From NCBI GenBank assembly GCA_001643675.2, contig LSRY02000032.1, positions 62,001 to 126,000 of the forward strand: a stretch of DNA of 64,000 nt, in the 5' to 3' direction. The DNA comes from Monocercomonoides exilis PA203. Lineage: Eukaryota; Protista; Preaxostyla. A model generated the notes under the pieces. It searched no databases and had not been told where the DNA came from. It saw only the letters and a program-made list of their open reading frames with translations. Below, piece after piece: positions 26,575 to 26,923 of this stretch. The first letter of the stretch is position 1, and each line of letters opens with the position of its first letter. A program made the translations under genes and the position numbers.

Positions 26575-26923
26575 ATCGCATATAATACCGGACAAGATAG
26601 ATTTCACAATAACTACAAGAGGAATAATTCTGTCAATTTTCCTCAAAATATATCTCATTAATGCAAACTCAATTGATACACGAGACTTTCAAAACTTCCT
26701 CGTTAATGCTCAGAAAATTTTATTATTTGATTCTCGGATAAACTCAAAATCCTATTTCTCCGAGATTTCAATCATTCATTTTTTCTGAGCACAAATGAAG
26801 CTATTTTGAAAGTCTCGTTTATCGAATGAGTTTGTATTGATGAGATATATTTTGAGGAAAATTGACAGAATTATTCCTCTTGTAGTTATTGTGAAATCTA
26901 TCTTGTCCGGTATTATATGCGAT
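26575..26923. repeat. Long inverted repeat / foldback (120-bp arms 26575-26694 and 26804-26923); MITE-like element or hairpin RNA locus
   Basis: The left arm ATCGCATATAATACCGGACAAG...CGAGACTTTCAAAA matches the reverse complement of the right arm at 115/120 positions, with the outer 84 bp perfect. The inner spacer has further complementary blocks (TGCTCAGAAAA and TCTCGGA). Confidence 0.92.

Follow-up and report, generated by a model that had tools for sequence, protein, structure and literature searches.

A palindromic foldback between two Monocercomonoides exilis genes is very probably one copy of a TA-inserting MITE family of about 470 elements

Results

Identification of the foldback as a repeated, TA-inserting element

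The palindromic foldback described here lies in a 64,000-nucleotide stretch of the Monocercomonoides exilis PA203 genome (contig LSRY02000032.1, positions 62,001 to 126,000), referred to throughout as the window. It is very probably one copy of a non-coding, TA-inserting MITE family of the Tc1/mariner type with about 470 copies in the genome. The search covered the M. exilis PA203 assembly of 82,301,135 bp in 101 contigs. With the 355-bp foldback as genome query, at least 40 full-length copies were recovered at 84–88% identity, with 536 first-look candidates. Matches to a 22-mer from the outer arm, with up to three mismatches allowed, numbered 934 in the genome (475 forward and 459 reverse), compared with 0 for the reversed control. 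The forward and reverse matches are typically ~310 bp apart, and the 934 arm matches at this spacing therefore correspond to ~470 elements, or ~0.2 Mb of sequence. Within the window the family is represented by one copy. An exact scan of the viral collection with the arm 22-mer gave no match, and the one exact match in metagenomes, on a contig with 55% G+C, was judged to be due to chance.

Twenty-eight of the ~470 copies, picked as the best matches to the window copy, were aligned together with 40 bp of flanking sequence on each side. The termini CAG...CTG are conserved across the aligned copies, with TA on each side. Both flanks are TA in 16 of the 23 copies whose ends were placed automatically, with most of the others being one base off, and outside 48 ends a T is found at position −2 in 41 cases and an A at position −1 in 45. 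The copy at L028 is inserted in another repeat of ~270 bp, of which six other copies keep a single TA at this site. When the element and one TA are taken out of L028, the remaining sequence is colinear with the six other copies of the host repeat, and this paralogous empty site indicates a mobile element whose insertion duplicates TA. The ~270-bp host repeat was seen at L067:1445-1702, L009:2408-2674, L002:1880-2170, L013:1030-1300, L066:9430-9710, and L025:530-810. The first-pass annotation of the window had named a non-autonomous foldback transposon as one of two readings of the palindrome, and had proposed to search the genome with the arms for further copies and target-site duplications; copy number, TA duplications, conserved ends and empty site together bear this reading out.

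A false inversion introduced during long-read assembly or polishing has a negligible probability. Fold-back chimeras can occur in nanopore assemblies, and ten rounds of short-read polishing were applied to the M. exilis assembly, but foldbacks of this structure are found at hundreds of loci that differ in their flanks and carry individual mutations and TA duplications, an empty site is present in paralogous repeats, and the window element is situated inside the contig between two intact genes.

Boundaries and architecture of the window copy

The coordinates of the element, its parts and the other features discussed are collected in Table 1. The true ends of the window copy, taken as the points where the similarity among the 28 flanked copies stops, are at 26551 and 26928, giving an element of 378 bp. 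The ~350-bp unit initially delimited at this site is thus correct as a foldback but not in its extent, the true element being larger. The palindrome seemingly starts at 26575 because the left end has one extra 19-bp subterminal unit. An 11-bp direct duplication had also been noted at the left edge and is indeed present, with copies at 26565 and 26584, because the left end holds two 19-bp subterminal units; it was rejected as a target-site duplication, since it belongs to this tandem unit. The 19-bp subterminal unit is presumably a transposase-binding repeat. Usually one or two units are present per end across the family, with a maximum of six, and the number of units per end sets the family lengths of 359, 378, and ~397 bp (overall range 359–399 bp). 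Six tandem units are found at one end of L022 (1829-1947). The left terminal unit of the window copy is of a variant type common to L005, L007, and L027, with two further changes, and the conserved nucleotide at the right end is mutated (CTA for CTG).

Table 1. Coordinates of the window element, its neighbouring genes and related loci (window positions unless a locus or contig is named)
Feature	Position	Strand	Basis or remark
AGC-type protein kinase gene (Pkinase and Pkinase_C), upstream, with introns	22923-25320	+	
TA target-site duplication, left copy	26549-26550	.	28-copy flank alignment, end composition, empty site
Whole MITE copy, 378 bp	26551-26928	+	2 left and 1 right subterminal units
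Left terminal unit	26551-26574	+	CAG terminus
Second left 19-bp subterminal unit, with second 11-mer	26575-26593	+	Units counted in all loci
Perfect 84-bp outer stem, left half	26575-26658	+	
Left arm, remainder	26594-26730	+	Left arm 12.7% from consensus
Loop or asymmetric centre	26731-26767	.	
Right arm inside terminal unit	26768-26904	-	Right arm 4.4% from consensus
Perfect 84-bp outer stem, right half	26840-26923	-	
Right terminal unit	26905-26928	-	Terminal CTG changed to CTA
TA target-site duplication, right copy	26929-26930	.	
Calponin-homology-domain protein gene, downstream, with introns	27157-28500	+	
Piwi-domain match, 179 bits	59800-60711	-	One of the genome's four Argonaute/Piwi loci
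Dicer-like gene, two RNase III domains	G000:C22:80457-81815		Sole one in the genome
Nested ~9-kb DDE_3 element	L063:5637 to L064:4872 (G000:C12, about 941.6-950.9 kb)		

The arms at 26575-26694 and 26804-26923 are mismatched at exactly five positions (26659/26839, 26663/26835, 26672/26826, 26674/26824, and 26679/26819), and the arm comparison thus confirms the two 120-bp arms with five mismatches and a perfect outer 84 bp that had been described. The pairing was also said to continue imperfectly towards the centre and to leave a short loop, which agrees with the extended pairing reported by a repeat finder, in which two arms of 159 nt (26572-26730 and 26768-26926) match at 88% and are separated by 37 nt. 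Across the family the arms pair over about 160–190 nt. The perfect outer stem of the window copy carries three variants relative to the family consensus, each of them present on both arms. As had been noted, the element is positioned in the longest non-coding gap of the window, with no open frame of at least 90 codons at 25343-27548 in a crude six-frame test, and it encodes no credible protein, the sole overlapping frame being a spurious TTG-started one of 72 aa. In the same intergenic spacer, ~45 consecutive T and then interrupted T tracts occur at 26130-26200.

Superfamily assignment and candidate autonomous partners

The elements share the TA duplication, inverted repeats with conserved termini, small size, lack of coding capacity, and high copy number of Stowaway-like MITEs. 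The assignment to the Tc1/mariner superfamily is based on three features, namely the duplicated TA, the CAG termini, and the layout of the ends, by which Stowaway-like MITEs are also recognised (PMC3814204). Transposase loci of the DDE_3 (Tc1/IS630-like) type give at least 108 matches in the genome, whereas mariner matches are few. Pogo-like DDE_1 matches are very numerous, with 732 first-look candidates genome-wide, many of which have open frames of 400–650 aa. In three coding Tc1-like families the TA is followed by a CAG end and then by two tandem units of ~21 bp, the sequence of which differs from that of the MITE unit. The coding Tc1/IS630-like families of M. exilis at L037-L054, with ORFs of ~424 aa, resemble the MITE in their TA flanks, their CAG terminus, and the same layout of two tandem direct units per end. 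In contrast to the 19-bp unit of the MITE, their unit is ~21–22 bp long and has another sequence, the similarity ending after the first three bases. Given these differences in unit sequence and period, the L037-L054 transposases are unlikely to recognise the MITE.

The 19-bp MITE unit is absent from all 34 DDE_3/mariner transposase loci compared, a sample outside which lie ~80 further DDE_3 matches and all of the pogo-like matches. A pattern search for the terminal units followed by non-MITE sequence gave a single match, which is a mutated MITE and no partner. At L029 the left end of a MITE lies beside a 422-aa DDE_3 ORF, but this locus was rejected as an autonomous partner because it represents a nested element. 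The nested element, a DDE_3 (Tc1/IS630-like) transposon of ~9 kb with inverted 21-bp minisatellite arrays at its ends, interrupts a MITE copy near position 101 of that copy, the rest of which lies beyond the insertion. Variants of 552–715 bp were also rejected as partners, these being MITE copies with nested inserts of 250–400 bp; insert-interrupted copies were seen at L068:579-1167, L069:630-1209, and L067:662-1432. Proximity between arms and transposases is at chance level, with one pair closer than 2.2 kb (C1 near 1.90 Mb) when 100 listed arm positions were compared by hand with ~260 transposase match positions.

An origin of the MITE outside the Tc1/mariner superfamily, with a chance preference for TA, or its mobilization by an unrecognised type of transposase, would be consistent with the fact that neither the 34 DDE_3/mariner loci nor the pattern search yielded an autonomous partner with matching ends. 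We nevertheless regard such an origin as very improbable. The 2-bp TA duplication, the CAG...CTG ends, and the tandem units resembling binding sites constitute a Tc1/pogo signature, the combination of TA, CAG, and tandem units is common to the three coding Tc1-like families of M. exilis, and TA duplication is the defining property of Stowaway-type MITEs (PMC3814204).

Homogenisation of the two arms

Within copies of the family, one arm has been copied from the other at the DNA level. Arm symmetry was read from the assembled (polished) sequence of the 28 best-matching copies, in which each arm diverges from the family consensus by 9.4% on average. In 115 cases a variant is present symmetrically on the two arms of one copy, as compared with 47 ± 6 when the arms are given shuffled partners (maximum 68 in 1000 shuffles), and 16 of these symmetric variants are restricted to a single copy in the sample. 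The copy at L009 (1480-1877) is a perfect palindrome of 193 bp per arm, and the arms of L016 (1480-1875) are perfect over 184 bp. Perfect tracts starting from the outermost base extend over 165 bp in L005 and 163 bp in L017, and a perfect tract of 139 bp is found in L014. The arms of these five copies are each 11–17 sites off the consensus (13–14 for L009 and L016), while the remaining copies have 20–38 scattered arm mismatches, giving a bimodal distribution. The nearest other copy to L009 among the matches listed is 91% identical to it; independent decay since the split from this relative would be expected to leave ~17 differences between the L009 arms, whereas 0 are seen. Perfect tracts of at least 56 columns from the outer end are present in at least 10 of the 28 copies, including the window copy, compared with ~0.5 expected when computed at the outer-arm mismatch rate of the family.

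Divergence increases across the family from 4% in the outer arm to 12–28% near the loop, so that the divergence growing towards the loop, remarked upon in the first-pass annotation, is real in the window copy and is a family-wide property as well. The gradient fits a homogenisation of the arms that is anchored at the outer end, combined with faster decay near the centre of the palindrome. The copying itself probably proceeded through gene conversion or fold-back synthesis. In L005, L009, and L017 the symmetry begins at the outermost nucleotide and halts at the element ends. It is conceivable, although we consider it unlikely, that the rewriting of the arms is tied to the element itself, in that repair triggered by transposase cleavage or hairpin extrusion regenerates the palindromes, the copies thereby driving palindromic change and maybe serving as Dicer substrates. 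To our knowledge, such a palindrome-regenerating repair step has not been described for Tc1/mariner MITEs.

A larger symmetrical structure is found at L012:820-2535 (G000:C80, with the copy at about 1629250-1629645), where the MITE occupies the centre of a perfect fold-back of 1.7 kb. The flanks of this copy are exact reverse complements of each other over 660 bp per side, and the perfect symmetry reaches 106 bp into both MITE arms, leaving the inner 90 bp asymmetric, whereas the flanks of eleven other copies are unrelated. The arrangement at L012 suggests an inverted duplication by fold-back, with the turning point inside the MITE hairpin.

Small-RNA and cis-regulatory interpretations

The other reading offered in the first-pass annotation was a hairpin gene producing siRNAs or miRNAs. 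As a dedicated small-RNA locus, the stem would be transcribed and diced, and the resulting guides would regulate a gene or silence transposons. Folding of both strands, as suggested there, gave a very stable prediction either way, at about −220 kcal/mol; the values for the foldback region are −222 kcal/mol for the plus strand and −220 kcal/mol for the minus strand, with z-values of −27 and −29, respectively, relative to shuffled sequences. The machinery for processing such a hairpin is also encoded in the genome, which has four loci with Argonaute/Piwi domains and one Dicer-like gene, and any transcribed MITE copy could therefore be diced. MITE hairpins have moreover become miRNA genes elsewhere, as in the case of Made1 and mir-548 (PMC1784062).

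Despite these points a dedicated small-RNA locus is improbable. The window copy is one of ~470 near-equivalent copies, and a search of Rfam over the element matched no family. A sub-threshold Rfam match to mir-2229 at 26395-26452 on the minus strand (25 bits against a gathering threshold of 65, E 0.021) falls just outside the left end of the element and is most likely due to chance. Three of the five arm mismatches do become G-U pairs if the plus strand is transcribed, as had been pointed out, but the probability that three transitions are compatible with the same strand is 1 in 4. Across the family the G-U-compatible arm mismatches are divided 139 to 130 between the strands, with no strand bias, and half of the mismatches are transversions, which argues against RNA-level selection on one strand. 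Copying of DNA up to, and not past, the element ends accounts for the symmetric variants. The copy also lies outside typical UTR distances on both sides, the stop codon upstream being 1,230 bp away and the ATG downstream 228 bp away, compared with mean UTRs in the M. exilis genome of 312 bp (3') and 62 bp (5'). Multiplicity, lack of an Rfam match, absence of a G-U strand bias, and location thus all count against the proposed siRNA or miRNA gene, and nothing marks out the window copy for a small-RNA role. By analogy, an siRNA role for the family as a whole would be possible.

The distance of 228 bp to the start codon at 27157 could likewise suggest an exaptation of the window copy by the calponin-homology gene, on which it would act in cis, for instance as a promoter or cruciform site. 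Position is the single point in favour of this exaptation, and the copy shows the same decay as the rest of the family, with a left arm 12.7% from the consensus, making a regulatory function of this kind extremely improbable.

Discussion

The history of the window copy as a Tc1/mariner-type MITE may be reconstructed as follows. A DDE transposase of the Tc1/pogo type, encoded elsewhere in the genome, would have bound to the 19-bp units, excised the MITE at its CAG termini, and inserted it at TA sites. The window copy would in this way have been inserted between the AGC-kinase gene and the calponin-homology gene and would then have decayed, and its closest relatives now differ from it by ~13%. 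The nearly perfect pairing of the stem probably has two sources, the first being that the family was built as a palindrome, and the second that one arm was recopied from the other at the DNA level, through gene conversion or through repair synthesis on the folded-back strand. The recopied part of the window copy comprises the outer 84 bp. Rather than a regulatory RNA gene, the flagged locus is transposon debris, an old relic of the family.

The closest counterparts in design are the C. elegans elements Tc7/CeleTc1, Tc6, Cele1, and Cele2, which are listed as Stowaway-like MITEs with long inverted repeats (PMC3814204). Like these, the M. exilis MITE is small and non-coding, is present in hundreds of copies, and duplicates a TA target, and its arms are much longer than the TIRs usual in autonomous Tc1/mariner elements, making it an almost complete palindrome. 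It differs from them in its oxymonad host, in having 1 to about 6 tandem 19-bp units per end, and in that no autonomous element with its ends was recovered among the 34 transposase loci compared. We know of no sequence similarity between its ends and those of Tc7/CeleTc1, Tc6, Cele1, or Cele2. The human Made1 element is a palindromic mariner-type MITE as well, the transcript of which would fold into a long hairpin as that of the M. exilis element would; however, Made1 measures 80 bp, and precursors of mir-548 miRNAs have been documented among its copies (PMC1784062), whereas the M. exilis MITE matches no Rfam model.

Repeats make up 46% of the M. exilis nanopore assembly, unclassified repeats constitute 35% of the assembly, and neither MITEs nor mariner are mentioned in the assembly paper (PMC8767320). 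The elements described here form a new family within a well-known class of MITE, and the genome that harbours them is poorly annotated. Their description turns ~0.2 Mb of unclassified repeats into a defined, classifiable family with clear ends, target, and unit structure, which aids repeat masking and gene annotation in a reference genome for an amitochondriate organism. Further attention is best given to the homogenisation of the arms and to the fold-back at L012, and the former is relevant beyond the family. The perfect palindromes in diverged copies, together with the L012 fold-back, provide a natural data set on the repair of inverted repeats and on how small hairpin elements seed larger palindromes.
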